Origin: Klebsormidium nitens
Lineage: Eukaryota > Plantae > Klebsormidiophyceae
Direction of reading: 5' to 3'
Assembly (NCBI GenBank): GCA_000708835.1
Contig: DF237135.1
Location: forward strand, 1-64,000
DNA length: 64,000 nt
Part shown: positions 3,003 to 20,658 of the stretch, one piece after another
Position numbering within the stretch: position 1 is the stretch's first letter
Layout: every line of letters starts with the position of its first letter
The notes under the pieces: model-generated
What the model was told of the DNA's origin: nothing
Seen by the model: the letters and a program-made list of their open reading frames with translations, nothing else
Database searches by the model: none
Position numbers and translations under genes: made by a program

Positions 3003-6000
3003 TTAGCTCACGCTTTCGTCAGCCCCGGTCTGATCCCGCCCCCGGTGCCCTTGCGTCTTGAGCATGTCCGCTTGAAACTGCCCTTTCGCTGCCGCAAACT
3101 CGCGGTTCAACGCTTGCAGCCGCTGCTCGACCAGGTTCATTTCTTCGCGCATGAATCGAAAGCGCTGCTCCCAGTAGCCCCGCAGCCACTCGTCCTCGCC
3201 ACCCATGTCGGCGAGATGACACGTGCCCTCCAAAAGACAGGGGTGGCCATACGAGGGCCCGCCAAGACCCCCTACGGAGGATGCCAAGCCGATCGGGTGT
3301 AAGGGCGACCGGGCCCATAGGAAGAAGTACGCCTGCAAAAGAGAACGCGTGAGAGTTGGACTTTGCTTACACTATCGCCCAAAAAAACACAGAGTCTAAG
3401 AGCAGCTCTCAAACATACAGTAACTGCCTATCCATTCAGTGCAGTCGTTTAGTGCAGCCAATCCAAGCGAAATTACTTGTAATACGAACAGATGCTGAAA
3501 TCATAAACCGGACCACCACATGAGTTTGCGTGAGACCTTGTGACCAGTCGCAGGCTGCCAGCTGTCTCACCTGTAGTAGCAAGAGGATCGCCAGCACCAG
3601 CACCACGACCCCCGCCTTGAGCTGCGAAGCCGCCTTCTCCGACTCCACCAGCCGGCCAGTGATCGCCTTCAGGCCCTGCCCCAACCAGGCCCCCGGCAGG
3701 CTCACCCGAGCGACTGTCTCTCCGCCCAACTCACCCCCGGTGCCGGCCTTAGTCAGCAACGGCGTGGTCGGGCCCGACCGCGCCCCCTGCCCGGGGTTGG
3801 GCACCGGGTGGGTGCTGAGGCGCGGGGAGTGCCCCACGGAGGGCCCGCGCGAGGCGTCGTCCAGCTTGAGCATGCGCCGGATCTCGTCCTCGTACTCCAC
3901 CGGGATCTTGCCCTCTGTACACAAAAACGCCGAGGGGGCAATCTTCAACTTGGGGATCGTTTGCTGACAGGTAACACCAGTTCCTCTTCTGACGCTAGAC
4001 AGAAGCCCGCTCTTTCTAGCGGAGCCAAACGCGGAAGAGGTATTGGCAAAATCCGCAGATCGTGCCATTACTGCACCTGATCAAGAAACCTCGCCTGCCA
4101 CTCAGCTGCACAGAACGTGTTCCGGCACCCTCGCCATGCAACCGCTACAATGGACCCACCCTGAGACCTGTCAGCGAACGTCCTTTCAAAGTAGGCAACG
4201 GTAGATTCCGCAAAGACTGGTGGGTGCGCACCTAGGTGACTCAGCACGTCGTCATTGGTGACGGGGGGGCTGCCAAGGGACACGGAGCTCTGGCGGTGCG
4301 GCGTGACCACGCGCGATGCCGGCGCACTCTCCCGCAAGTCGCCCCGTGCTTCTAAGATGGCCGCCTGCGCCTGCACAATGCCGACGAGATTGCGTCACCG
4401 CTCCAACCGCCCTGCGACCTGTCCCAACCGTCACATGAAGTTCGGCCGTTCTTTTGGATCTGGCACAGGTGTGGGCGGACGGCAAAGACACGGTCGTTCA
4501 CAAGACAGTCCCTTCGGTACTTGGATTCGGTCAAGCGAGCAGCTCGGTGCGGCTCGCTTTGTGCTGGCACAAACAGCCATACAGGTGCGGCCCTACCTCG
4601 TGCACCCAGGCCTGGTACGTCTCGCGGCTCTCGTCCAGCGTGCCCTGCTCGATCTTGCCTGCACGCCGAGAAAAGAGACTGTCAATGGGCAGCTTTCAGA
4701 TCTAAAGAGGGGCGCCCCACACAATTGGCCGGCACAGCCAGAGGGGCTCAGCCCTGATACGAGATGCATGAGGAAAAATAAAAGCGCGCAAATAGAGTCA
4801 GGCATGGTTTGAAAGCCTGCTACTTACGTTCCACGGTTGGAAGAGGTCACCCACGCAAGGCGGTTGGAGGAGAAGGCTTGACCGCTTAACCCAGCATTCG
4901 ACCCCTCACATCTAAAATTCATCTACCTTTTGCCATAGGCGCTTTCAAACAGTCTTCCTGAATGGCCAATCTTCGCAGACGGTCTCGTTCTCCCGACTCC
5001 AACCCTTGCTTTCTGCAGTCACCAGCCTTGCCGCACGACGGCGGCACGCACCTTTCCAGACGGTCTTCTTGGCGAAGGGCACGTCGAGGCTGATGCGCAG
5101 GTTGCAGCAGTCGGGCCCGCGGCCCTGCAAGTCCTCCACGTCCCAGCGCACCTCCACCGAGAAGTAGTCGCCGTACGGAATGTCCTGCATCGTCTGGCTC
5201 GTGTAGATCACCACGTGGCTGCACGTAATGGGCGGAGAGAACGGGTGAGCGACCTCAAAGGATTGGCGAAGTGCCGGTGATTGTTACGCGTGCGGAGAGT
5301 GAGCGAATTCGTGTGAAAAGACGACCGTCCGTGAATCAGGCATCCAAACTATCGTGTCCTGGATACAGCTTCGAAAGCAGCATGTCCTGGATACAGGACA
5401 GGCTACTACAAGCGAGGGCGGGCTCCAAGAATAATCAGGATAATTCCAACCAAGGACAAGTCCGCCAGCGGACATGGGCTAGAGCTTTACAGGATAATCC
5501 ACGTGAAGCACATGAAAAGGAGTAGGACTAGACTCGTAGGGCAACGACCCGTCGTAAAGAGTAAACGAGGCTCACTTGCGTCGACAAATCCTGTAACTTT
5601 GCGTCTGCCGGCAAAAGGTGGACTTGGGCCCTGCGGTAAAGCAAAGAAGGCGTCAATATGCTGCGGGGTGAGAGCATAGCAAAGCTGACGCCACGCATTT
5701 CCGCAACACAAAGTGACACTGACAGTGGGAGAACGAGAAATGGTTGCAATCAGGACTGTGCTCTGGCGGCTAAGTGTAATCCCCCGCAAAGCCATCGGCC
5801 CAAAGTGGTGCAACCCAAGGTCGTGCACTTTATGGTTTGTTCTCAGCAGAGCGAACACCTCGACCATAATTTGAAAACGCCTAGATCAGCGGGCAATCCA
5901 AGGAAGCCCCACGGGAAGCACAGCTGTTTGAGCCCGAAATGTGCGGACGCACCAAAGTAGAAGTTGATGGGGTGGCGGAAGGAGAGCTCCCGCACGTGGC

Positions 6001-9000
6001 CGTACTGCGAGTCCGCCTTCCACGGGCTGCACCGGAACTCTGCAAAAGAAAATGGTCGAGCATCGCATCCTGTGCTATTTGCACACGGAGGGGAAATCTT
6101 TCTCTCGAAACTTCTAGGTGCGGAGGGAAGCTAAATAGAGCTGGTAACTAAAAGCTCGAGTGGAGTCGGGCCTTTGGGGGTGGGCAGAGACGGCCAAACT
6201 TGGCGGGTGAGAAACACGCTGACGAAGTGCAAATGTGCCCTGAGAGGGGGCCTGACCTTGGTCGCCACGCGCGGTGTGGAAGTTGTACAGAAAGTCCGAG
6301 GCCTCGTCGGAGAAGAAGAATTGGAACATGTCCTTGGAGCTGACCTGTACGAATAAGCAGCCGAAAAGGTAAGCACCACAACGCAAAGGTGGGGAACAGC
6401 ACGAGCGCCGCTCAAGCCCCCATGTGAGCAAAGACACTTCTCGGGGTGACGGCCAGCCTGCTTTGAAGCGACGGCGAAGCTTTCGTCCAACTAGAAACTA
6501 GCAAGAGTTCATTCGTCTTGCAGTAGGCAGGGCCTAGGGACATTCAAGGCGTGCGGGAGTTTCGCAGGACTCGGCGGGCCAACTCTTGAGCCGCAGATCC
6601 GTTCCATAGACCGAGTATTCTCGCAGCTGTGCCCGAGCAAATTGTGTTTCGTGAGAGAGCGCTCACCGACAGCTCTGTGTCCATGATAGTCTTGAAGGTG
6701 TCCGGGACTGCACGGCGAAAAAGCGGTAGCCGGTCAGGGCTAGGCAGACAATTGCAGGTTCTGCTAGCAAGGTGTCCGCGTCTGCTTCTGATGCGAGTTC
6801 AAGCACCAGCGGATGCCAAGTACATCGCAAGTTCGATTTACTTTCTCCAAACACGTCTCTTTGTATGCTTGGGACACAAAGCAAGTCTTCACGCAAACGC
6901 TCCCTTCGCACCCTTTCCTGGCCACCACGCTCAACCCCCCCGTTTACGTCCCCAGCTTCTTCCTGCTCACCTTCCGGGGGGTCGATGTCCTCCACCTCCC
7001 ATGCCCGGCCCGGGACGGCGCGGCTCGGGGACTGCAGCTCGCGCACCATGGCCTTGGGTACGGGCGGCTCCTCGGAGGAGTCCTTGGACATTTCCTGGTC
7101 GAAGGGGGCCTCCACCAGAACGTCGTCCTTGGCGCCGCCCACCGGCCCAACGGCGCTCTCCAGGCTGGGCGGGCCGGCGGCCTCGGGGCTCTCCCCCTCC
7201 CTGCGGAAACGGAGTGGCGGTTACTGCCGTGGCTCGCGCTGGACATCCAGAGTTGCGCGTCACAGATAACGCTAACCCACCACTCTTGCACTTTGAAGAA
7301 GAAGCTCACAAGTTTGAGCTCGTTTTGAGGTCGTTTCTGAAACCGTTTCAAAGGGAGGCCAAAGAACGGCCAGCTTCCGCTTCAACTGTTTGAGCTTCTG
7401 CAGAAGCGCAATATATGCGAGGCTTGGCCTCCTCACCCGACTAGTGGAACGAGGGCGAGGGCTTCGGCGGCGGTCTCGGCGAACGTGAGGGTCTCCCCAT
7501 CCTCGTCGTCGTCGCTCTCGCGGCGGGTCGACGCGTCGCTGCGTGTGCTGAGCAGCCCGTTCGCCTCCGCATTCAGGCGGTTCTGTGAAGATGGGGCAGT
7601 TCTGAGTGTTGGGCCCTTGACCTTATTTGATTTGGAAGTTCATTTGACGAAGCTTGACTTCTTTCTCTGTGTACGTTGGACGTCTTCTGGTTCGACGAGC
7701 GCGTGCAACTGTGCATACATGCTCTGTCAAGCTCACGGGTTCGAGCAGAATTCTAAGGTGCTCTCACATGAGTTTGAACAACATCGTGAAGTAAGCATTC
7801 GCTTCCGCAAACTTCTTGGCAGGAGAACAGCTAAAGAGACCCTCTTAGAGTTCGCTTTCATCTCGACCTCACATGAACATCCAAGATGCGCAGAACTCCC
7901 AAAAGCAGTGGACCAACTCTGCAGATGCTTACCCCAAGAAACAGCTTGGCATAGCCGCTGTGCTGGGACCAGTTGAGGATGATGAGCCGGTATGCCTCAT
8001 CCCGCGACAGGAAAGAAGCAAAGAAGTGCCGCTTGCCCCACGCCACGATCTCAATGGCATTCGGAAAGACGGCTGCGGTCTTGGCCTTACGCACCACCGT
8101 GACGTCCTTCAGAGGGAGCACTTTCTGCGAGGAGGTGAGGGCAGCAGAGTGGGTGCAAAGGATGCCATTAGGTGCTGGGGCGAAAGAGCAAACCGACCCA
8201 GTTGCTCTTGAAGTTACTTCGCCAGGGAGGATGCCTGGAGAGCTGACTTGGAGACAGGCAGGCAAACGATTGCGTATCATGCAACCCCTGCCGCAAATCA
8301 AGAAATCGACTTGACTTGTTGAGGAAGCTCGAAAGCTCGAGGTTTCAAAAATAGACGACCGGGACCTGTGGTTGGCATGCCAAAATGTTCATGCTGGCCA
8401 CAGACTGCCTGTAGCGTAGGTCTATGACGCTCGCCAATTGGTATGCGGGTCTTTCGAGAAGGAGGGAGCATCGACCATTTGTGACTATGTCTTGATATGA
8501 CGTCTGATTTCACGCCTTCTTGAAAGACTTGAGTTGCCTTCTTTGGCGATCACATTTTGTCTTTTGTTGAGTTGTGCAGACATTTCGCGTACGGCTTCGC
8601 ACTCTTTCCGGATCAACTATGGCATTGACTTTGGGCACCCCACTTGTGCGGCCGGAATTGAAAGCGAGCTCCGAGACCTTACCTTCTTTTCAAAGCCGAA
8701 GATGTTCGAGTAGAAGCATACGTATCGATCGAACAGGTACATGTGGCCCTGCAGCAGGATCTTCTTTTGCAGCGCGCAGTTGAAGTCCTCAATCAGGTTC
8801 TGCAATACGTCGGGGGAGGATAAGATCAAACCTTCAAGGCACCAGCCTTCCCGACCGGCCAAAGAGGATGTGAACCTTTTGATCGGCCCTACAGGGGGCA
8901 CGTGACCTAAAACAACCAGCATACAATCCTTGCAAAAGCTCAGAATTAAGAGAAGCGCCGAGGACTTGCTTGAAGCACGGCTCAGCTGACATCATCTGTG

Positions 9001-10249
9001 GCGCAGGTGCCTTGGAGCGGTCACTCACCTCCTCAGGGGGGAGGTGAAAGAAGCTTCGGTACTCCTCGCACTTGGTGGGGCGCGGCAGAAGCTGCAGCAG
9101 GACAACAGAACGCACTATTGACAACAAGGCAATGCTCAAGCTCGAATTGGGCACTACTCATGGCTCTCGACCCGACTGGAATTGAGCCTCCTCACACAAG
9201 GCCCCTGTTTTGTTTGCAAATGTCTCCAAAAGCAGGATTGCAAAGTTCAGGGGTGAAACTTCTTGCAAGGTAGTTGGGGGAAGCCATTTTGACACACAGT
9301 AGAGGCCCCAAGCGCTGAGCCAGGCTGTGCCTATCTCTGCTTTGCAAGACAGGTGGGGCTCAGTGGTTACCATCACTATCGATCCTGAGCAACTGCGCAC
9401 AGGAGTATTTCAAGTGGGGCATGAATGGAAGTCCTTTGCACATGTTTCTGGCACTGAGAATGGGCACTCTTTCAATCCAATTGCCCCTCTGAACAAAAGC
9501 AGTGAGCGGACCTCGCAACACCACAGCGCCCCATTTGCCAACTGTTCCTCTCGCCAGTTGATATTGTTCCCTCTAAGAAAGGAAGTTACTAGAGCCAGGG
9601 CAACAATCAAACCAATCTAAACATTGGTTTTCTGAGTCCCTAACTTGAAACCACAAATGACCCTGTCAGGCGCCCTCCTTTTGCGCCCAATGTCACACAA
9701 GTTCCACCAACTTCACATGAGATTATGGTCCCGCATCTGCCACTAAGTGCATCAGGGGACCTTGCCAAGCCTCGTCAGACAGCGTACCTGCTCCTTTGAC
9801 AAGGTTGTCTTCTTGAAACTGACGCGCCGAGAGACAGAGCCCTGCTTCTCCCTGTCCTCGTCTGACCCAATGGCCTCAGTGCTGGGGGTGAAGCCTGATC
9901 CCCCCTCGGCGCCCTGCATCCCTGCACTGTCGCTAGTCTGCTGCTTGGGGGTGCCAGGCAGTCCCTCTAAACCCTCAGCATTGTCTGGGGGGGTGATGAT
10001 GGGCGACAAGAGGCCTTTGCTTGCCCTCACAGTGCTCGACCCCTCTATGCTCTCTTTGGCAGGTGACTGACTCGCCACCGCTGCACTGCCGTTGCCCCCC
10101 GTCCAAATGTCGGAGTTTGCGATCTTTTGGGTCAGAGAGTTGTTGCTGATCTGTGAGAAGGTCTTGTACAGCGTCTCCATCTTTGCATTCAAAGCGGCCC
10201 GCTTCTCTCCGCTCATCGAGACCCGCAGTCCTGTCGTCCCGGCATGCAA
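3003..10249 (-). CDS. VAD1: VAD1-like GRAM + VASt domain membrane-anchored lipid-transfer protein (multi-exon; 5' end uncertain)
   Basis: GRAM exons: LQKKILLQGHMYLFDRYVCFYSNIFGFEKK (~8.7-8.8 kb) and VLPLKDVTVVRKAKTAAVFPNAIEI...FFASFLSRDEAYRLI (~8.0 kb). VASt exon: VIYTSQTMQDIPYGDYFSVEVRWDV (~5.1-5.2 kb). TM helix: AGVVVLVLAILLLL (~3.6 kb). Terminal coiled coil: YWEQRFRFMREEMNLVEQRLQALNREF, with the stop at 3003-3005. This domain order matches plant VAD1. Confidence 0.85.
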
Positions 10250-11044
10250 TCAAGTGCCCCCTGCACGGTCTCCCATTGCGAAAGCCGAGTTACTCACATG
10301 ACCATAGCAAAACCTTCCACAAGGCGTGTGAGAAACCCTGACTGCAGGTTGGATGGGACGCAAGATCAGATGCACGTGTCCTTCCCCGCTTGGACAGACC
10401 CGTTGCTGGACAAACTGCCTGCTGCCCTTGTCCCTGCTGCTTCGGGAATCCTACATCCGCAATGCTGTGCTGGAAAGTGCGGCCGGCTTTTCCTTGCGAC
10501 GGTGCACTTGCTTCATGCACCTTCTTGAGAGGTCTACAGTTTACACTGTCACAAAATCTAGAGCCTTTCAAAATGTACCAGTTTGCCCGGACTTGCGTAC
10601 ATTAGTACAGTAGCTATGTACCTAGCGACCATCTTCGGCGAAAATCCGGCACTACCTTCGAGGAACTTCTAGGGTTCCGGCAGCCCTCCGGCAGATTTGC
10701 CAGCGGAGAATCTAGGTACATGCGTCGCGCCACCTGGCAATGGCGGCGGCCAGCTTCAACTCCATCTGCGCCTCATCCTTGCTACTACTAGCCTAGCTCT
10801 GACTCTCAGTCTGATTCTAGTCCTAGGTCCAATCCTAGATTGCCAATGCAGGCTTGCATGCTGAACTTGGAAGCCCTCTGCAAATCTTCTGCACCAGTAC
10901 TAGTACCGCATTGCTGAGTGCCACTGTCTTCTTGGAGCCTTTGATTCACCCGTCGTTGTGGTTCTTGAGAAGCTGGAGTGCGCAAGAGATGTCAGCTGGC
11001 ACCCTACAGGCAGCATTGGAGCTGCCATTGAAACGTAGAGTTTT

Positions 11045-12946
11045 ATGGCTGCTTTTCCAGTGGTGGTGGTCACTCAATGGATCCACGACGAGGCGATCGC
11101 AGCATTGGCGGCATTTGCGACTCCTATCCTAAACCAAACGAAGGAGACTCTAAGTCAAGCGGAAGTCAAGCGGCGGTGTCGGGATGCTGACGCAATGGTG
11201 GCGTTCATGTCTGACTGGGTGGACCGAGAGGTCCTGGACAGCTGTCCTAAACTAAGAATTGTAGCAGCAGCGCTGAAGGGTTTCGACAACTTCGACGTGA
11301 AGGCGTGCGAGGAGGCAAGTAAGAAACACCTCAACAAATGACATCCGCCGCCTGAGACTTAGTCATTGAGCAGGGTGACACTTGACATGGCGCTGAGAAG
11401 ACCCAATTGCTCTTCCATAAATCATAAGAGCAGCCGTAATCTGTGTCACTTGGTGGGCGGCCGAGGTCGCAAAGTTAGGAGCACCAATTATATCGAGCAC
11501 TGGCCCATGCGTTTGAGCAGATGACTCACTTCCTCTTTCTCCAAGCGCAGGCTGGCGTCTTGCTGACCATCGTTCCAGACCTGCTGACTGAGCCCACAGC
11601 AGAGCTGGTGATTGCCCTCACGCTTGGGCTGATGAGGAATATCCTAGCGGGAGACGCGTACGTGAGGAGCGGTGCATTCCAAGGGTGGCGGCCCATCCTG
11701 TATGGAGCAGGCCTGAATGACAAGGCAAGCAGTGGCCTTGGCAGTCCTCGGGATTCCGTACCTGTTGTGGTAGTCACTGGTGTGGAACTCCGAGGAGAGA
11801 AGAGCATATGACGAGATTCGGAAAAATTGTGCGGTTTGTCGCTGCTGTTTCCTCAGTGCGGCACTGAACACAATCTTACCAGTGAGGCCAACACTGTGCA
11901 AATGAGCAGAGGCGCAACTTATTGCCATGTATCTGCCACTTCCTGGACATTTGACAACCTTAAACAGGCAAAGTGAGAAGAAGTTATCGAATTGCGACTA
12001 TGCAAATGATGATACTATTATGGCTGGTTTTATTATCCAATCATTTGAAGTAAAGCCTGCCCATCGAATCTCCAAAAAGTTACGCAGAGCAACTCGAGTT
12101 TTCTTCTCCGCAGGTGATTGGTGTCATCGGCATGGGCGCCGTTGGAAAGGCTGTTGTTCGGCGGTTGGTGGCGTTTGGCGTTCGAAAGCCGATCTTGTTC
12201 CTGGACCCCAACCAAGAAGCAGCCACGTCTGCTCTACCCATTGCCCCAGCGTCAAGTCTCGCAGATTTGCTAAGTGCAAGCAACGTGGTCATCCCTCTTG
12301 TGCCCCTGACTGCGGACACCACACACCTATTCGATGCACAAGCCCTGCGCATGATGAAATCAGGCGCCTTCCTGGTGAACTGCGGGCGAGGGTGAGGCAC
12401 TCACTGTTTGCTTTGGCATTCGTCCTTAGAGTGCAACAAACTTGGGGAATGGTTTCACAAAAACAGGCGTCCGGCGGCCTGGTGTTAATTGCTCTAGGAC
12501 TATCACATCCTGAAGATTTTGATCTTTCTTAAGTTGCCAATGACAGTGTGGGTTTACATTGGGTTATAGTGCTGAGGGGCCACTGGCAGAAGGTAACTGC
12601 TACCTCAGGATCTTTGTCATACGTTTTCTCGTGAATCTTAGCTGAGATGTAACAGCTTTTGTGATGCAGGTCAGTAGTCGATGAAGACGCCGTCGCAGAA
12701 GCCCTAGAGACAGGGGAGCTGGGAGGGTATGCAGCCGATGTGTTCGAGTTCGAGGACTGGGCACGGCCTTCGAGACCGCGGCAGATTCCTGAGCGCCTGT
12801 TAAAGATGAAAGATCGGACCCTTTTCACGCCGCACTTAGGCTCTGCGGTGGACGAAGTTCGAAGAGATATTGCCCTCTTTGCAATCGAGCAGATTAGACA
12901 GCTTCTCGTTGACAGAAAGCGGCCCACACATTGTGTGCCTTGTTAA
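11045..12946 (+). CDS. ptxD: Phosphite dehydrogenase (phosphite:NAD+ oxidoreductase, PtxD family of D-2-hydroxyacid dehydrogenases), 4 exons: 11045-11314, 11551-11724, 12114-12391, 12670-12946; 332 aa
   Basis: The spliced ORF is 999 nt with no frameshift. PtxD signature blocks appear in order: [106 protein letters not shown]. Equivalents of P. stutzeri PtxD M53, K76, W134, Y139, R237, E266, H292, S295 and R301 are present as M55, K78, W136, Y141, R240, E269, H296, S299 and R305 (reference recalled, not searched). An in-frame TAG at 11036 precedes the ATG. Confidence 0.92.
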
Positions 12947-13790
12947 GACGAGCCGACGCGGATGAGAATCAGCTGCCAAGTCATCCATGCACGTCACTAC
13001 AAAGAAGCCTCTTGTCTACAAGCAACACGGCAAACTGCAAGATTTGCCAAGGTTTATACGACTGTCCAAATCATAGCTGGCAAGACCTTCAAAGTCCAAG
13101 ATTCAGACCTTCAAAGTAACTCGAGCAGATTGTTGAGCTAGCCCAAATCTACTAAATCATCGCGCCTAGTGCATGCAGCCGCATCACGTGTGACCCGCCC
13201 ATGAAATTGGTTTAAACAATGTAGTATGGCGCGGGCCGACAAGGCGGGGCCACCAGTGGCAGCTAGGCATGTGCCCCGCAATTGGTTTGAGGTGTATGGT
13301 GCCCGAACATGATATCATCAAGTATATACTTCATGATCGGACATGAACGGTGAGTACCATGTGCATTGAGTCTTGCTCAAGATCCAAATCCGGATGCTAG
13401 CATGGCATACTGCATGCAACTGGCATGATGTGCAGTATATGTTGGCGGCTCGATGTAAACCGTCTGATCGATTGCGTGCCTGCGCATCCACGTCATGCCA
13501 CGGAAGGAAACACTGGTTAGAGGGCGGCCGACATCATTAACACGACCTAGCGCGGACAGTTCGCTGCCGCGCCATCATATATACAAGATTGTGAACAGAG
13601 ATTAACTCGGATGCACAAGTCACTATGCTCTTATTGCATAGTAGTACTGCCACGTGTACGGACCCCCAACTCTGAACAAGGTTCTGGGGATTGCATCCAT
13701 GACATGTCATACCGTATAACACCGTCGAGGTTCAGCGCGCACCAGTCATACGAGCGCCGTCAGCTTACATCAAACTTTACATAAACATTC

Positions 13791-16700
13791 TCAAGCTGTC
13801 CTTGGCACATCTTCCGTCCGCCCGGGTGCTTCTTCTGACGCAATTTTACCAACTCGTAGTAGCAAGGAATTCGTTACGACTGCAACTGAACTAAAAGCCA
13901 TCATGGCGCCAGCAACTGAGGGGGTTAACGAAATGTCATAGGCCGGTAGCAGAGCCCCCGCTGCTAGCGGTATGCCCACTGCGTTGTACGCGAGGGCCCA
14001 AAACAAGTTCTGCTTGATCTTGTTGAACGTGGCCCGACCGAGGGCCACCGCCTCCCCAACCTGCACGACGTTGGAGATTGTATTGGTCGTCTCAACAGCG
14101 CAAGAGTGCACTAAATCCGTAGCACAGAAAAGCCTGGCAGACGAGATCGTGTAACCGAGCGACACTACCCTGAAGGAGACCGTCCATTTTTCAAAGCAGG
14201 CATCAGGATGGGACGTCTGCTGAAAGGGACTTCGAGAAGGACTGGCTCCTTTAAAAACTTTGAACGGGGCTCACCTGGCCCAGCCTGTTCCCCATCAGGA
14301 TGACCGACGCAGCTTCCTCCGCTGCGTCCGTCCCACCCCGCAACGCAATGCCCACGTCAGCGGCTGCCAGGGCAGGCGCGTCATTCACGCCGTCACCCAC
14401 CTGAGGACCGCAGGGAGCAGGTGAGGCGAAAGCAGGAAAACGCACGACTTGAAAATGTATGCAACTCAAGTCAACGGAAACTGTTTCAAGTTACAACGCA
14501 TACACGTTTACCAAGTTCTCCGGCCAACTTCAGTATGCGCGTTCAAGATTCACAAAGCCGAAACGAAGAGGCTTCAGCCTAAGCACAGGTGTCCAGGTCG
14601 TCACGTTTCAAAAAACCACGACACCGCCAGCATTGAAGTACAGCGAGCCACCAACAGGAAGTGAGGAAATCAGGAGACGCTCGTACCATAGCCACGACCG
14701 CCTTTTCGTCCCTGAGTGCGCCCACGAGCCGCTGCTTGTCTTCTGGCCGCAGCTCCGCATAGACGTCAGCCTCCGCAATCCCGATCCGCTGCGCCACAGA
14801 GCGGACGCTCTCCCGCCTGTCACCGGACATGATCAGGGTCCGCACCCCCAGCTCTTGCAATCTGCACAGGGACAGCTGAAGAAAGTGTTAGAATAGAGAA
14901 CTTTGCCGCAGCCCGACGGACAGACGATCCAGGACCCATCTTTTCACAACCAAGGACGAGTGTGGGCCCCTATGAAATCAAACTCGCCTTTATGAGTCGA
15001 TGCAAGCCTCTGGCTTACGGGACAAGACTTCGGCGCCACTCACGAAAGCGCAACCTTTGTCCGTTTCACCTATGATAAGAGCATCGCAACGATACGTGCC
15101 ATACTGTGCGTCAGCCGCCCTGACTCCGTCCCCTTTCTCGGTCGCCTGTAGGCTTTTTGGTGCAGTTGTTCCCAGAGTATGAAGTGGTCTCCTTCGCATC
15201 TAGCATAACACAGCTACCATGAAGAAGGCACGAGACGCCAGACCGCACGAGAGCCCTCACCGTCGGACAGTCGCCGCAGCATCTTTCCGGACGGCGTCCA
15301 CGACCCCAACTGCTCCCACCACGCCGCGCCCCTCGACGCCCACGAAGACCACCGTGCGACTGCCGGCCGCGTCCTCGATCCCCTTCTCCGCCCGATCCCG
15401 CAACTCGTGCTCCACTCCCCGGGGCACTCCCTCCGAGCCCACTACCTCCGCGACCCAGTCAAACGCCCCGACCGCAACTCGTAGCCCGGAGACTAGCCCC
15501 GACGCCCCTTTGCCTGGCTCTGTGCGCGCGTCTTCGACCGCTGAGGCGGAGGTGGAGAGGCCCTCCGACTGCGCCCGGTTGACGATCGCCGTGGCGACCG
15601 GATGGCGGGTTGTGGACTCGACGGCAGCTGCAAGGCGGAGGAGCTCTGCCCGGGGGATGTCGCCCCGGGTGGCGACGGAGGCAACGCTGGTCTTGCCTTC
15701 CGTCAGAGTACCCGTCTGGAAGAGGGTTTGAACAAGAGAAGTTCGTGACGACGACTGATTTCAGTGGCGTAAGCGAGAACAAATCCTTGGGTTTACAGAA
15801 GACAGCCAGGAGATGACAACTCCCGAGAAGGTATGAGATCACTGGTCAATCACTGGTATCGCACTTACTCTTCTCCCTTCAGCACACCTTCCTAACGTAC
15901 GTTCGGAACAACTCAATCACTTCCTAACGGTCAGGCGAGGGAGTACCACTTGAGAAACGATCCAACTGTTTATTAAACAGTCAGTCTGGAGGCCAACTTA
16001 TGAAGGCGGCTCGACCGTGTCCCTCACCTTATCAAACACGACGGTGTCTACTTTGGCGGTCGTTTCCAGGGCGTCCCCTCCCCGCAGCAGCAGCCCCCGC
16101 CGGGCGCCCAGCGACGTCCCCACCAGCACGGCAGTCGGAGTGGCCAGGCCCAAGGCGCACGGACACGCCACCACCTGAAAGAGCCATGAGCGCAAGCTCA
16201 AGGCGAGTGCTTGGGGACCGTAGGAGGAGCGGTCGAGACGCCTTTGGAACCAAACGAAGAACGTCAATTCTCCACGACCGGTGATAAAAAGCTTTGCTGT
16301 GGGAAGAAGTAAAGCGCACCAATTCAGTTGGCACTCGATCTTCTCATGGCTGTACCTGGCCGACTAGCAATTCCGCGGCTGCAATGGATCGAAGGGTTTT
16401 CGTCCCTTTGCTACAGTCAACTTCCGCAGAAACTGCCCTCTTTTGTAACTCCAAAGAGTTGCATCTTAGGCTTTCAACTATAAAAGGTTGAGACAGATGT
16501 GCTCAGAAGGGAATCACAAGAGGGGACACATCGTGCGCGCGGCCGCAGTGCGCGCTTGTGGGTGGCCTGCCCGTGGCTTACCAGTACGTCGATGGCCAGC
16601 TTGAGGCTCAGCAGGAGAGCGCTCCCGTCCGGGCCCGCAGCATCACTGTACAAAACTTCCGGAAACAGGCTGGTCCCCAGACCGTACCTGCGAAGCGAGC

Positions 16701-19700
16701 GTGGAAGCGCGTCAGCAAATGGTAAGAGGAGACGGAAGTGATTTGGTTGACACACTTGCTGCCACTCTTGAGCCAGCCTGCGACCAGTGCACGCCGGACA
16801 CTGGCTGGCGAATTGGCCGACCAGATGAGGGGCAATGGATTAGATGTTTGGCGAGTAGGACGCAAGAAACTCTGAGGTACTCCTGAAGCGCATCTGATGA
16901 GCGCCTTTCAATCCAGATTGAGTTCACAATCAGCGACCAGGGATACTAAGGACGAATGCGCTCAATCAACCCATCTCGGATCGTTCTTGCTCCACATCTC
17001 GACTATGCAACTAACCAAAGCCCAAACCAGTTCAACTGACAGCCCTTGATTCGTTGCCCGATCTACTAGACGACAGAGAATCTTTGACACTCCCCTGCAT
17101 GCTCACCAAAAGTAGGGCCGGAAGAAAGAAACGCTCAACGGCCATCTACGAACAAGCCCGGACCCTCCTAGCGCTCACCAGAATGCAAACGTGGCCGCCG
17201 AGAGGCCCATGACGCTGAACACGAACGGCCCCGAGATGCGGTCCGCCAGCCGCTGCACTGGCGCCTCGCGCGCCTGCGCCTCCTCAACGAGCCGTGTGAT
17301 GCCCGCCAACACGCTGTGCGCGCCCGTCGCCACAGCCTCAACCGTGAGGGGGCCCTCCTGCCACGTGGAAGACACGCGGGTGAGCTGGACGGCAAAGCAA
17401 CGTCGGCCGGGCCGGGGCGGAGTCCTGCTGCTTGCTTGGGCTGTCAGACTTGCAAAAGCTTGGGCTAAGAAAAGTTACTCGTTCATGTCCGAGGAAACAA
17501 CGAGTAATGACGGAGTGTCGTTACAGGCTACTGCGCGACATGTTCGAATTGGCACTCTCTAAGTGCACCCATAACGCTTGGGCCGATGGGACAGGCGTGA
17601 ACAACGTGAAACGGCTAGCTTACCCAGTTGATCGTCCCTGCGGACACCGCCGCTCCCTCCTCTTTCGGCACGGGCAGCGGCTCCCCTGTGAGCATGGACT
17701 CGTCCACCGCACTGCGTCCGCCGACCACTCGCCCCTGAAGTTACCAGATGCACGCTTTGGCACCGATGTTGAGCGTAGGTGCTTGTTCTGACAAGCTTGC
17801 TTCAAGCCTCTTAGTACAGGCTGGAATGTTATCTCGGCAAGACGGTAAGCGAACCGGTTCAAAACAATTGAAATCTACCTCCAATCAGTCAATTGGAGGG
17901 GTTTGCCTTGATGCGACTCTTATCAAAGCCCGGTGCATGCCCCAAACCGAGGAGGTCCTTCGTTGTTGTAAGCAGCGGAGAGGGGCGCAGACTCGACGGT
18001 TGACAGACAGGCACGTCTTTGCAAGAGGGTGCGGGCTCACATCTACAGGGAGCGACTCCCCTGGCAGCACGAGCACACGGTCCCCCGGGCGCACTTGCTG
18101 GGTGGGGACCTCTACACTAAACAGCGGCTCGGCACCCCCGTTCTCCTTCACTCGGTCGGCCGCGCTGTCCCCGAGCACCAGGCGAGCTTTTGCGGGCAGC
18201 AGGGACTGCACAACGATCCAGGGAGAGGAGGTGGGGACCGGGGTATGCAGGGATGCCCGCACTATCTGGAAGACTTCGAGTTCGAAAAAATAGAAAAGGA
18301 AAGCGTAGAGCCAGGTGCGAGCGGAGACAGAGTATGAGCAAAGATGGAGTTATCTAGGCACCTCCAGTCCTAAGTCAGAATTTCAACTCCAGTTTGCAAG
18401 CCTATCGGCAACTGGCTGGTTTAAAGGAGCCCCTATAAGCGATGTAGATCTGCTTAAGCCCTGGATTCAGTCGAATCAGCTAAGCATGACGACAGACAAG
18501 CGAATGTTGCGTACCGCCAGGGCCTGCACGTCGGTGGCCGCTTTGGCACGGGCGCGGGCTTCGAGCGTTCTTCCGAGCAACACGAAGCCGAGCAGCATCA
18601 CCTGCACAGATTCTCGAATGTGAGTGAACAGTAAAGTACCCTTTCTACAAGGGCTTTCGTTTGCGGAAAAGCAGAATCACCACTCGTTATGCAACACGAT
18701 CATATAAATCATCCATTCTACAAAATTAGACTATTCAGTTGCAGAAAAGCACCCCGTAGAATCCAGGCCATAACTCTGGTGAAACCAGGTGAATAGCCAA
18801 CCAAAGGCTTGTAAACGTGGTTTTCGTCTTCAGAGAGCAGCCATGGCTTCAGAACTCTCAAAGCAGGCTTCACATGAGGCGACATGGTGGCAGTAAAGGA
18901 GTTAGTGTCGCTCACTGGCTCCTCAAAGAAGGACGCTTCCCAACCAAGGTCAGGCAGGGCCAGGGATGCCTGCGCAGCAATTTAAACGAGGTGAGGCAAA
19001 TGATGACTGCAGGACTTATTTGCAGCAGGTACAATAGTTGCAGCAGGTACAATAGCTAGGAACGACGTCAGAGGTCCTGAGGGGCAAGTACAAGGCAGTC
19101 CGAGGGGCCTTCACAGTTGAGGTTAGGTAAGATTGTTAACCCCCTTGAAGGAATAAATCATCGACAAGCAATCGATGATACAAAATCGGGTGCTTCGAAA
19201 CTCACGGCACTGATGGCAAACGCGGACGCGGCCCCAATGCTGACCAGCGTGTTCATGTTGGGTGAGCCACGGAGCAGGGCTTTGGCGCCATCCACAACCA
19301 GGGCTGCATACGGGGCCCAAAGGAAGACGGTAAAACACCCACAAGGTGTTGCTATGACAGCTGACCACCCCACCAATCATGCTGATTGTATGAAGAGGCC
19401 GATGTGCACATATCAGCAGCAGATTAATAACCAGCGAGAAATGCTTGCAATAAGTCCTTTAAACCGTCCAGGCGTCACTCACGTCGGCCTGGTCCCACTA
19501 GCGCCGCAATGGCAATAGCGCACTGGACAGAAGGCACCCCCAAGAAGGAGAGGAAGGAACCTGCAACAAGAATGAGATAGGGGGAAAAGGTGAGGATGAG
19601 AGTAGCTAGAGGCAGGGGAAGAATAGGGAGACAGTGATGTTTTAAGGGCTTTTCTTCTGGGGGCACAATTGAGAAATGCAAACGCTGCGCTTTTAGAGTA

Positions 19701-20658
19701 CTATAATAAGGGCCGGCGGAGACTACATGGTCAACGCTAACTAGGAACAGCACAGGGGGCAACTGGGGAGTATGACAGCGGTTCAAGTTACCCCTCAAAA
19801 GAACCCTTTCAAAGAAACCCTTCGTTCACTCATTCTATACCCCCTGGACACCGCGGTAACTCATCTTTCCTTGTTCTCCTTAGTCAACTCTTCGATTCAA
19901 AGCCACAAGAAAGGGAGTGAAGACTTGTTAAAAGTCCCACCATGTGCAAACTGGTGGAACCCCAGCCCATGCAGCAGGTGCCCTGTGTGGTGTGCCAGGC
20001 AGACTGCCACCAGGCCCCACGCCACCCCCAGCTGCACCGTGGTGTCACGCAGACTCTCCTCACGCTGCCTGGCCAGGGCTTCCCGCTGGTTGGTCGCGGC
20101 AAGTGCGTCGCCAAACTGCCGGACGGACGTGGAGAAGCCACTCTTGGACAGCGCTTCCGCTAGGGCCTGGCCTGTTTCTAAAGCGAGCCCGGGACGCAAC
20201 TGCACTGCCGCTGTGTGTGTCAGCAGGTTCACAGCCGCAGAGGCGACCCTCGTGTCGCTGGCCAGTGTGCGCCGAACCGACGCTGCGCAGCCGCCGCACA
20301 TCATGCCTGTCACGTCCAGCAATACACTTTCCCCCTTGGTCGCTGTCTCAGCTGGTGAGGCCGCCAGCTCAGTTGCAACCGCAAGCTGCGCGTAAGTCGC
20401 TCGCTTTATGCCCCCCAAATGTGGCAAATCCTGGCGTGGGATTTTTGAGAAACGCTGCTGGCGGCGCAGACATTGCAGTGCGTCCCCTGTGGTGCTCAGC
20501 TGCTTTGCAGAAACGAGGTGCCTTGGGGACACTATGCAACTTTCAGTAGAACATCCAATCGGTGCGGGCAGACAACTCCTCATAAGAGTAGCTGGAGCTT
20601 TCGGAAGCTTGGCGAGCAGCTGAAAGCATTGCTCTGTCATTCGGAGCGACTGCGCCAT
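13791..20658 (-). CDS. HMA8: Chloroplast P1B-1 copper-transporting ATPase, PAA2/HMA8-like (multi-exon)
   Basis: A transit-like N-terminus starts at ATG 20658. HMA domain: [14 protein letters not shown]. His-rich first TM region: [21 protein letters not shown], which resembles PAA2 more than PAA1. Other motifs: [43 protein letters not shown]|[18 protein letters not shown], and YNAVGIP plus MAFSS in the last exon. Confidence 0.9.
19020..19055. repeat. 18-bp tandem duplication in an HMA8 intron
   Basis: ttgcagcaggtacaatag occurs twice in tandem. Confidence 0.8.

Follow-up and report, generated by a model that had tools for sequence, protein, structure and literature searches.

Scaffold DF237135.1 (156 kb; assembly GCA_000708835.1) of the streptophyte alga Klebsormidium nitens contains, at positions 11045–12946, an intron-bearing gene, ptxD, whose product is by sequence a true member of the phosphite dehydrogenase (PtxD) family. 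The window analyzed here comprises the first 64 kb of this scaffold, and all coordinates refer to it. The original prediction described four exons that join in phase to a protein of 332 residues, and exons, phases and product could be reproduced as claimed. The spliced translation is identical, residue for residue, to the public K. nitens protein P0152 (332 amino acids), which was recovered with a profile that combined the four exon translations with bacterial homologues. P0152 carries the generic annotation 'D-isomer-specific 2-hydroxy acid dehydrogenase superfamily [Klebsormidium nitens]'. The parts of the gene are as follows.

10698–11044, plus strand: 5' untranslated region (UTR) of ptxD, unspliced; RNA contigs start at 10698, 10752, 10893 and 10907
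11045–11314, plus strand: coding part of exon 1; amino acids 1–90, N-terminal substrate domain
11315–11550, plus strand: intron 1; 236 nt, phase 0, GC-AG, donor GCAAGT
11551–11724, plus strand: exon 2; amino acids 91–148, with VPDLLT and the GWRPILYG segment
11725–12113, plus strand: intron 2; 389 nt, phase 0, GC-AG, donor GCAAGC
12114–12391, plus strand: exon 3; amino acids 149–241 (last codon split), Rossmann NAD-binding part with GMGAVG
12392–12669, plus strand: intron 3; 278 nt, phase 2, GT-AG, donor GTGAGG
12670–12946, plus strand: coding part of exon 4; amino acids 241–332 and stop
12947–13156, plus strand: 3' UTR; RNA contigs stop at 13094–13156

The joined exons form a reading frame of 999 nt, i.e. 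332 codons and a stop. Each acceptor consists of pyrimidine-rich sequence with CAG at its end; the donor contexts are AG/GCAAGT, AG/GCAAGC and GG/GTGAGG for introns 1, 2 and 3, respectively. Splicing of introns 1 and 2 in frame demands the GC donors, since neighboring GT dinucleotides cannot keep the frame. If the GT close by in intron 1 were joined to a different acceptor, three residues would be added and the collinearity with the homologues would be lost. The introns postulated originally are thus real, with the addition, missing from the earlier description, that two of the three are of the GC-AG type. Among plant introns GC-AG borders usually account for about 1%, and the share in ptxD is far above this value.

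Around 20 candidate RNA runs with two organism labels were available over the stretch. Transcript evidence was taken from X1, X8, X11 and X14, which belong to four different studies; their Logan contigs, as distinct from raw reads, were placed on positions 10000–14000. The run type was only guessed to be RNA, but the material of the four runs was evidently RNA because their contigs show spliced joints. These joints lie at 11312>11549 (236 nt skipped, 4 ambiguous bases), 11722>12112 (389 nt skipped, 3 ambiguous bases) and 12390>12669 (278 nt skipped, GT..AG, cut shifted by 1). Allowing for the ambiguous bases they equal the predicted introns 1–3, and all three were found in each of the four runs. 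The spliced transcript that the original prediction had named as a check is therefore present. The contigs match the window without any mismatch (100% identity) and delimit a transcript from about 10698–10907 to about 13094–13156. Hence, ptxD belongs to the nuclear genes of K. nitens and is both transcribed and correctly spliced.

The assignment of the product to the PtxD family is based on solved structures, fold, diagnostic residues and phylogeny. Pfam domains PF00389 and PF02826 match exons 1, 3 and 4, and both are precomputed for the whole protein. A scan of the single exons against NCBIfam returned no PtxD-specific model, only generic glyoxylate reductase, VanH and PGDH models, all far below their cut-offs. 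In a phmmer search of the PDB the best match of every exon is a PtxD, either from Ralstonia sp. 4506 or from P. stutzeri, with E-values of 4e-26, 1e-19, 6e-15 and 3e-22 for exons 1–4. The best matches outside the family reach 3e-9, 4e-8, 1e-11 and 4e-8. The margin exceeds nine orders of magnitude at exons 1, 2 and 4 and is smaller at the Rossmann exon 3.

An AlphaFold2 model was calculated from an alignment of 18 sequences. It has a mean predicted local distance difference test (pLDDT) value of 83 and template modeling (TM) scores of 0.69–0.75 to PtxD crystal structures. It is weak at residues 121–142 and 268–273, probably due to the shallow alignment. The ESM Atlas model of the same protein (pLDDT 0.90) belongs to a 'phosphonate dehydrogenase' cluster that is mostly bacterial and whose taxon range is not readable there. 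With Foldseek the first 28 PDB chains are all PtxD (49–52% identity over about 330 columns), followed by glyoxylate/hydroxypyruvate reductases (GHRB) with 27–32% identity (human GRHPR 27%).

Thirteen diagnostic sites (M53, L75, K76, L100, W134, Y139, 175, 176, R237, E266, H292, S295 and R301) were read in an alignment of 308 sequences, with the numbering of a P. stutzeri-type PtxD from P. aeruginosa (P0170). Their equivalents in the algal protein, with P. stutzeri numbering on the right, are listed here.

Exon 1: M55 = M53, L77 = L75, K78 = K76
Exon 2: L102 = L100, W136 = W134, Y141 = Y139
Exon 3: Asp-Pro at the 175/176 equivalent (end of Rossmann β2); R240 = R237
Exon 4: E269 = E266, H296 = H292, S299 = S295, R305 = R301

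All 13 sites agree with the modal bacterial pattern. The algal signature M-L-K-L-W-Y-D-P-R-E-H-S-R is the commonest one and occurs in 153 of the 308 sequences. The catalytic Arg/Glu/His triad that had been proposed (R240, E269 and H296) is present, as are the PtxD-specific features named with it (K76, M53, W134/Y139 and S295/R301); the columns of R240, E269, H296 and K78 are invariant in the 18-sequence alignment. Arg301 is described as conserved in PtxD only, Ser295 and Tyr139 as PtxD-specific, and Met53, Leu75 and Leu100 as pocket residues (PMC6303947). The two non-PtxD outgroup homologues differ at positions 53, 76, 134 and 139. The residue printed as 'Trp314' among the family-specific residues in PMC6303947 we take to be Trp134, from the mutants of Hung et al. 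2012; the Trp134 column is conserved in our alignment. Moreover, 302 bacterial PtxDs define 78 columns with a conservation of 95% or more, and the alga retains 77 of them, the sole change being F61V; the bacterial median for these columns is likewise 77. Judged by its residues, the protein has remained under the functional constraint of its family.

The algal N-terminus aligns with bacterial residue 3, shows no extension, and the frame is closed upstream of the ATG. Since there is no targeting or transit-peptide-like extension, a cytosolic location of the enzyme is probable. The acidic residue at the Rossmann fold (FLDP), which the original prediction had linked to NAD+ preference, was found as the D175/P176 equivalents. 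Asp-Pro is the commonest state at 175/176 in the family, and position 176 is mutated in cofactor-switch variants of the Ralstonia enzyme, as stated in the PDB titles. Because Asp-Pro also occurs in the NAD-preferring Ralstonia enzyme, the algal protein presumably prefers NAD+. At the C-terminus, residues 322–332 (window 12920–12946) replace the bacterial consensus G-x-x-P-x-G-A-V/I-N. This tail ends in CVPC, a Cys-x-x-Cys-like motif that is absent from the aligned bacterial proteins.

Phylogenetic trees were calculated in a quick version with 102 rows and a careful one with 82 rows (LG+C20+F+G4 with posterior mean site frequencies, PMSF). As outgroup they contain two non-PtxD homologues only; eukaryotic reductases were left out. 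In the quick tree a branch with 99% support in the Shimodaira–Hasegawa-like approximate likelihood ratio test (SH-aLRT) parts 100 PtxD rows, K. nitens among them, from both outgroups, and the careful tree has the same rooting. The algal protein is thus located inside the PtxD clade and apart from both outgroups. Structure matches, Foldseek, diagnostic residues and tree agree in identifying a PtxD rather than a glyoxylate/hydroxypyruvate reductase, as had been predicted.

On both sides ptxD is flanked by multi-intron genes of plant type.

3003–10216, minus strand: GRAM + VASt gene (VAD1-like), 829 amino acids, multi-intron; head-to-head with ptxD, 7.2 kb
13791–20658, minus strand: HMA + E1-E2 P-type ATPase gene (HMA8/PAA2-like), 922 amino acids, multi-intron; tail-to-tail with ptxD, 6.9 kb

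GRAM, E1-E2 ATPase and HMA domains were found directly on open reading frame (ORF) pieces of the window, and a bZIP gene is also among the annotated neighbors. The domain sets GRAM+VASt and HMA+E1-E2 ATPase agree with the names VAD1 and HMA8 originally given to the two flanking genes. Together with the spliced RNA and the streptophyte host they confirm the nuclear, plant-lineage setting. In the RNA contigs the GRAM/VASt transcript reaches about 10467–10542, leaving a gap of roughly 150–250 bp to the start of the ptxD transcript, and a separate transcript begins downstream near 13693. The short divergent gap may be a shared bidirectional promoter region, and capture of an existing divergent promoter would be a plausible route to ptxD expression.

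Within 9000–15500 no ptxABC and no ptxE accompany the algal gene. The alga hence has the enzyme, not the whole ptx system. A comparison of 8175 ORFs from bacterial ptxD flanks with the same segment yielded six matches of 24–34 amino acids only, which is chance level, so that no relic of a donor flank was recognized. DNA runs of the same organism contain 95–100% of the sampled words over 9500–14500, both intergenic regions included. In a further DNA run (X29, 2023, organism label G) 44% of the sampled 31-mers of this segment are present. This share suggests a close relative at about 97% identity, perhaps with the locus.

The distribution of the family was surveyed with P0152 in 5.8 billion proteins including EukProt and NCBI, giving 4103 matches at E <= 1e-20. 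Among the best 120 of these, the top matches besides the protein itself are 57–58% identical, many are named phosphonate dehydrogenase, and all look bacterial or metagenomic. No other eukaryote occurs among these 120, with the proviso that algal transcriptomes may lie outside the database. A scan of metagenome DNA with six algal-specific peptide seeds found 252 relatives, all uninterrupted and at most 58% identical; no exon-split copy was among them. Exon 1 compared with 1.84 billion cluster representatives gave 88 matches at E <= 1e-10 with a maximum identity of 62%, and this search did not return the alga's own protein. A cluster search of the AlphaFold DB returned only multidomain representatives without organism names and was uninformative on eukaryotes. 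Two exon 1 matches (P0001 and P0002, 55–63%) were considered as exon-split eukaryotic models and rejected: both lie on bacterial contigs from metagenomes, which are short and probably chimeric, and one of them has an adjoining transporter permease gene. P0165 (589 amino acids, on a 400-kb NCBI contig) was likewise rejected as a eukaryotic fusion: it is bacterial and located in a transposase-flanked ptxA-ptxB-(fusion)-LysR operon.

The named bacterial ptxD loci, 80 in number, come from Pseudomonadota, Actinomycetota, Cyanobacteriota, Nitrospirota, Thermodesulfobacteriota, Acidobacteriota, Verrucomicrobiota and others. The ptx operon is present in bacterial comparators. Some features of the bacterial family are recorded here in their own right. 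Identical PtxD proteins are found in Herbaspirillum, Cupriavidus, Limnohabitans and a Chloroflexota bin (L018, L021, L022, L023), and again in Stutzerimonas and Klebsiella grimontii (L053, L054, L055), which points to very recent spread on mobile DNA or to bin contamination. At L083:6228–10633 a bacterial ptx operon encodes a PtxD homologue of 589 amino acids, followed by a LysR gene and flanked by IS240, Tn3 and IS66 transposase genes. The extra part of this protein is presumably a fused upstream portion; no separate permease gene was called there. P0011 (1614 amino acids) matches residues 11–50 of exon 1 ten times, each time in a separate stretch, and is apparently a repeat protein derived from an N-terminal PtxD fragment, or else an assembly artefact.

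In the careful tree K. nitens pairs with P0269, a protein from a soil-type metagenome (support 99/89). In the quick tree the two are placed together beside an Actinomycetota group. Cyanobacterial PtxDs form a separate clade (99/97). The G+C content at third codon positions (GC3) is 0.61 in the algal ptxD and 0.63–0.69 in flanking host exon pieces, as compared to 0.82–0.95 in the genes of its actinobacterial neighbors in the tree. A long residence in the host is indicated by the three introns, the host-like GC3 and the lack of any donor flank remnant. The direction from bacterium to alga would follow from the thousands of bacterial copies versus a single eukaryotic one and from the mobility of ptxD among bacteria. 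Thus, horizontal acquisition from bacteria is the best and most economical reading of these data, and an origin of the gene by horizontal gene transfer, with retained PtxD function, appears probable.

Several observations weigh against this history or against a functional role in the alga. The terminal branch of K. nitens is long (0.81). In approximately unbiased (AU) tests, grouping the alga with the cyanobacteria cost 33 log-likelihood units and was not quite rejected (p = 0.06), and a single bacterial clade that excludes the alga cost only 3.9 units (p = 0.43). Neither constraint was rejected, so that the tests single out no donor lineage; family membership is solid. Of the bacterial origin claimed originally, the acquisition is therefore supported by distribution, introns and GC3, but a position nested among the bacterial sequences could not be secured.

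Further points concern the expression of the protein. In run X1 only, a GT donor for intron 1 situated 4 nt 3' of the GC donor and overlapping with it is also used (joint 11318>11551). This form shifts the frame and leads to a stop after 104 amino acids, and in X1 its word depth is higher than that of the productive GC form. It may represent regulated unproductive splicing or an assembler artefact. Each of the four RNA runs also has minor contigs that keep intron 2 (window 11696–12141), with roughly 15–35% of the exon word depth, and retention of this intron ends translation after 176 amino acids. The frame-shifting donor and the retention of intron 2 give truncated reading frames and may reduce the amount of productive PtxD. 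The 5' UTR contains up to five upstream ATGs (window 10720–11044), among them the start of an upstream open reading frame (uORF) at 10989 that has 47 codons, is out of frame and overlaps the main ATG. The shorter transcripts starting at 10893 and 10907 omit all upstream ATGs except that of the 10989 uORF. Such an overlap with the ptxD start hints at translational control. The short ptxD promoter region contains no copy of the phosphate-starvation element P1BS (GNATATNC); two sites nearby correspond to the chance density of the whole window. Finally, a review states that algae cannot metabolize phosphite (PMC12009805), and the applied literature denies phosphite use to eukaryotes and algae. An Rfam scan of 10000–14000 matched no family, hence no known intron-hosted RNA was detected, including in intron 2.

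Plants and algae import phosphite via phosphate transporters but cannot oxidize it, and a single ptxD transgene suffices for their growth on phosphite (PMC12009805, PMC6943410). We propose that in K. nitens phosphite would enter via the ordinary phosphate transporters of the alga. A cytosolic PtxD would then move a hydride from phosphite to NAD+, giving phosphate and NADH. In P. stutzeri numbering, His292, Arg237 and Glu266 would carry out catalysis, and Lys76 and Arg301 would place the anion. The alga could benefit in two ways, from a soluble phosphorus source in soils and crusts and from relief of the interference of phosphite with phosphate-starvation responses and signaling. As to the history, a lone bacterial ptxD ORF, without ptxABC or ptxE, would have arrived horizontally and been inserted beside the divergent promoter region of the GRAM/VASt gene; the three spliceosomal introns and the host-like codon composition would have been acquired afterwards. 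We assign a probability of roughly 0.55 to the reading that K. nitens natively oxidizes phosphite and grows on it as a phosphorus source, which would make it the first eukaryote known to have an endogenous assimilatory PtxD.

The strongest competitor, although unlikely, is that the gene is a real member of the PtxD family with a present role other than assimilation of phosphite phosphorus. The enzyme might act on another small anion, have a minor function in hydroxypyruvate reduction or NADH generation, or be too scarce to matter. P. stutzeri PtxD does reduce hydroxypyruvate weakly, and other substrates of the GHRB type were never tested (PMC6303947). Protein output could be held down by uORFs, the unproductive donor and intron retention, and both the lack of a phosphate-starvation promoter element and the long terminal branch fit such a change. 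However, the near-invariant columns are kept in 77 of 78 cases, including Arg301, Ser295, Trp134, Tyr139, Met53, Leu75 and Leu100 of the tight phosphite pocket. Such retention is what continued selection on the ancestral activity should produce. In addition, the contig depth of ptxD is of the same order as that of the neighboring genes. Less probable still is inheritance from the cyanobacterial ancestor of the plastid by endosymbiotic gene transfer, or from an early archaeplastid, with loss nearly everywhere else. Such a scenario gains from the presence of ptxD in cyanobacteria (Trichodesmium, Nostoc, Okeania and Dapis loci), from the AU value of 0.06 and from the identity of at most 58% to every sampled bacterium, which fits an old event. 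The free tree, however, puts the alga away from the cyanobacterial clade, with the cost of 33 log-likelihood units for moving it there, and cyanobacterial identities (47–50%) are below those of the best other bacteria (55–58%). Very many independent losses would also be needed, because no other eukaryote is found among the matches listed.

Two further explanations deny either the gene or its identity, and we regard both as practically negligible. A bacterial contamination or chimeric assembly could be suspected from a gene of bacterial type without eukaryotic relatives among the matches listed, and the fully covering DNA runs may stem from the source sample. This artefact is effectively refuted: three spliceosomal introns are removed exactly in four independent studies at 100% identity to the window, GC3 is host-like, and the segment 9000–15500 holds no remnant of bacterial flanking genes. 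Moreover, neighboring plant-type transcripts begin within 150–550 bp on both sides, and a DNA run with another organism label has 44% of the words of the 5-kb stretch. That the protein is an ordinary eukaryotic GHRB reductase merely resembling PtxD would suit the generic public annotation and the single-exon NCBIfam results, where the best named models are non-PtxD, albeit all far below the family cut-offs. It is refuted at the sequence level by the full-length identity of 49–52% to solved PtxDs versus 27–32% to reductases, by the presence of all PtxD-specific residues, of which the two outgroups lack M53, K76, W134 and Y139, and by the 99% SH-aLRT branch between these outgroups and the PtxD clade with the alga. 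A functional, horizontally acquired PtxD is the reading we prefer.

The gene model itself is already public in GenBank, UniProt and EukProt under a generic name, and the kind of enzyme is well known. New, as far as found, are its recognition as a PtxD and the native, spliced and expressed nuclear copy in a streptophyte alga. A literature search returned no paper combining Klebsormidium with phosphite or ptxD, or with hydroxyacid dehydrogenase and horizontal gene transfer, and none on a native eukaryotic ptxD; most subscription journals lay outside this search, so an earlier mention is possible. Klebsormidium is not among the species named in the papers that deny phosphite use by algae (PMC12009805, PMC6943410). 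Phosphite fertilizer together with ptxD transgenes is promoted as a combined system for fertilization, weed control and contamination control and as a selectable marker. A wild streptophyte alga with an intact and expressed ptxD challenges the premise that algae do not use phosphite. If the proposed function is true, the engineered trait would have a precedent in nature, eukaryotes would have a point of entry into the phosphorus redox cycle of soils and biological crusts, and the assumption that no weed or contaminant alga uses phosphite would meet a counter-example. Terrestrial algae may then share in the oxidation of reduced phosphorus. With its host-like codon usage, its introns and its probable cytosolic expression, the algal gene also represents a plant-adapted version of PtxD. 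It would be a clean and easily tested case of a single-gene metabolic innovation by transfer from bacteria to an alga in a lineage close to land plants. It would be a surprising and practically relevant exception, not a new mechanism.

Compared with known systems, the GHRB reductases (plant HPR, human GRHPR and Pyrococcus GR) share the fold, both Pfam domains and the Arg-Glu-His triad with the algal protein, in line with the description of PtxD as a small clade within or beside GHRB (PMC6303947). At 27–32% identity, however, they lack the PtxD-specific pocket residues. The cyanobacterial PtxDs (Trichodesmium erythraeum IMS101, Nostoc and Okeania) come from phototrophs that assimilate phosphite and have family and signature in common with the algal protein, except for K76R in the Trichodesmium group. 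In contrast to the algal gene they are encoded in prokaryotic operons and, with 47–50% identity to the alga, form their own well-supported clade. PtxD of P. (Stutzerimonas) stutzeri WM88 (PDB 4E5K and others), the enzyme used in transgenes, is 49–50% identical to the algal protein and collinear with it save for small indels. Both have R237, E266, H292, K76, M53, L75, L100, W134, Y139, S295 and R301 in common, but the P. stutzeri enzyme has Glu-Ala at 175/176 in place of Asp-Pro, and its clade is not the nearest to the alga in the trees. Engineered plants and algae (Arabidopsis, tobacco, rice, cotton, Chlamydomonas and Picochlorum) manage with one ptxD and their endogenous phosphate transporters (PMC12009805, PMC6943410). 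These lines carry P. stutzeri transgenes, whereas the algal ptxD is natural, diverged and intron-bearing; in function it would act in the same way.

Among solved structures, PtxD of Ralstonia sp. 4506 (PDB 6IH2–6IH8) comes closest to exons 1, 2 and 3 and to the complete model, with 52% identity. It shares with the alga the length class, Asp-Pro at 175/176 and the catalytic and pocket residues; entries 6IH4 and 6IH6 are variants mutated in the 175/176 region to change cofactor use. The algal protein differs from it by an insertion of two residues after the Rossmann β2 region and by the divergent C-terminal tail ending in CVPC. While the Ralstonia gene is intronless and part of a ptxABCD operon, the algal ptxD stands alone and contains three introns.

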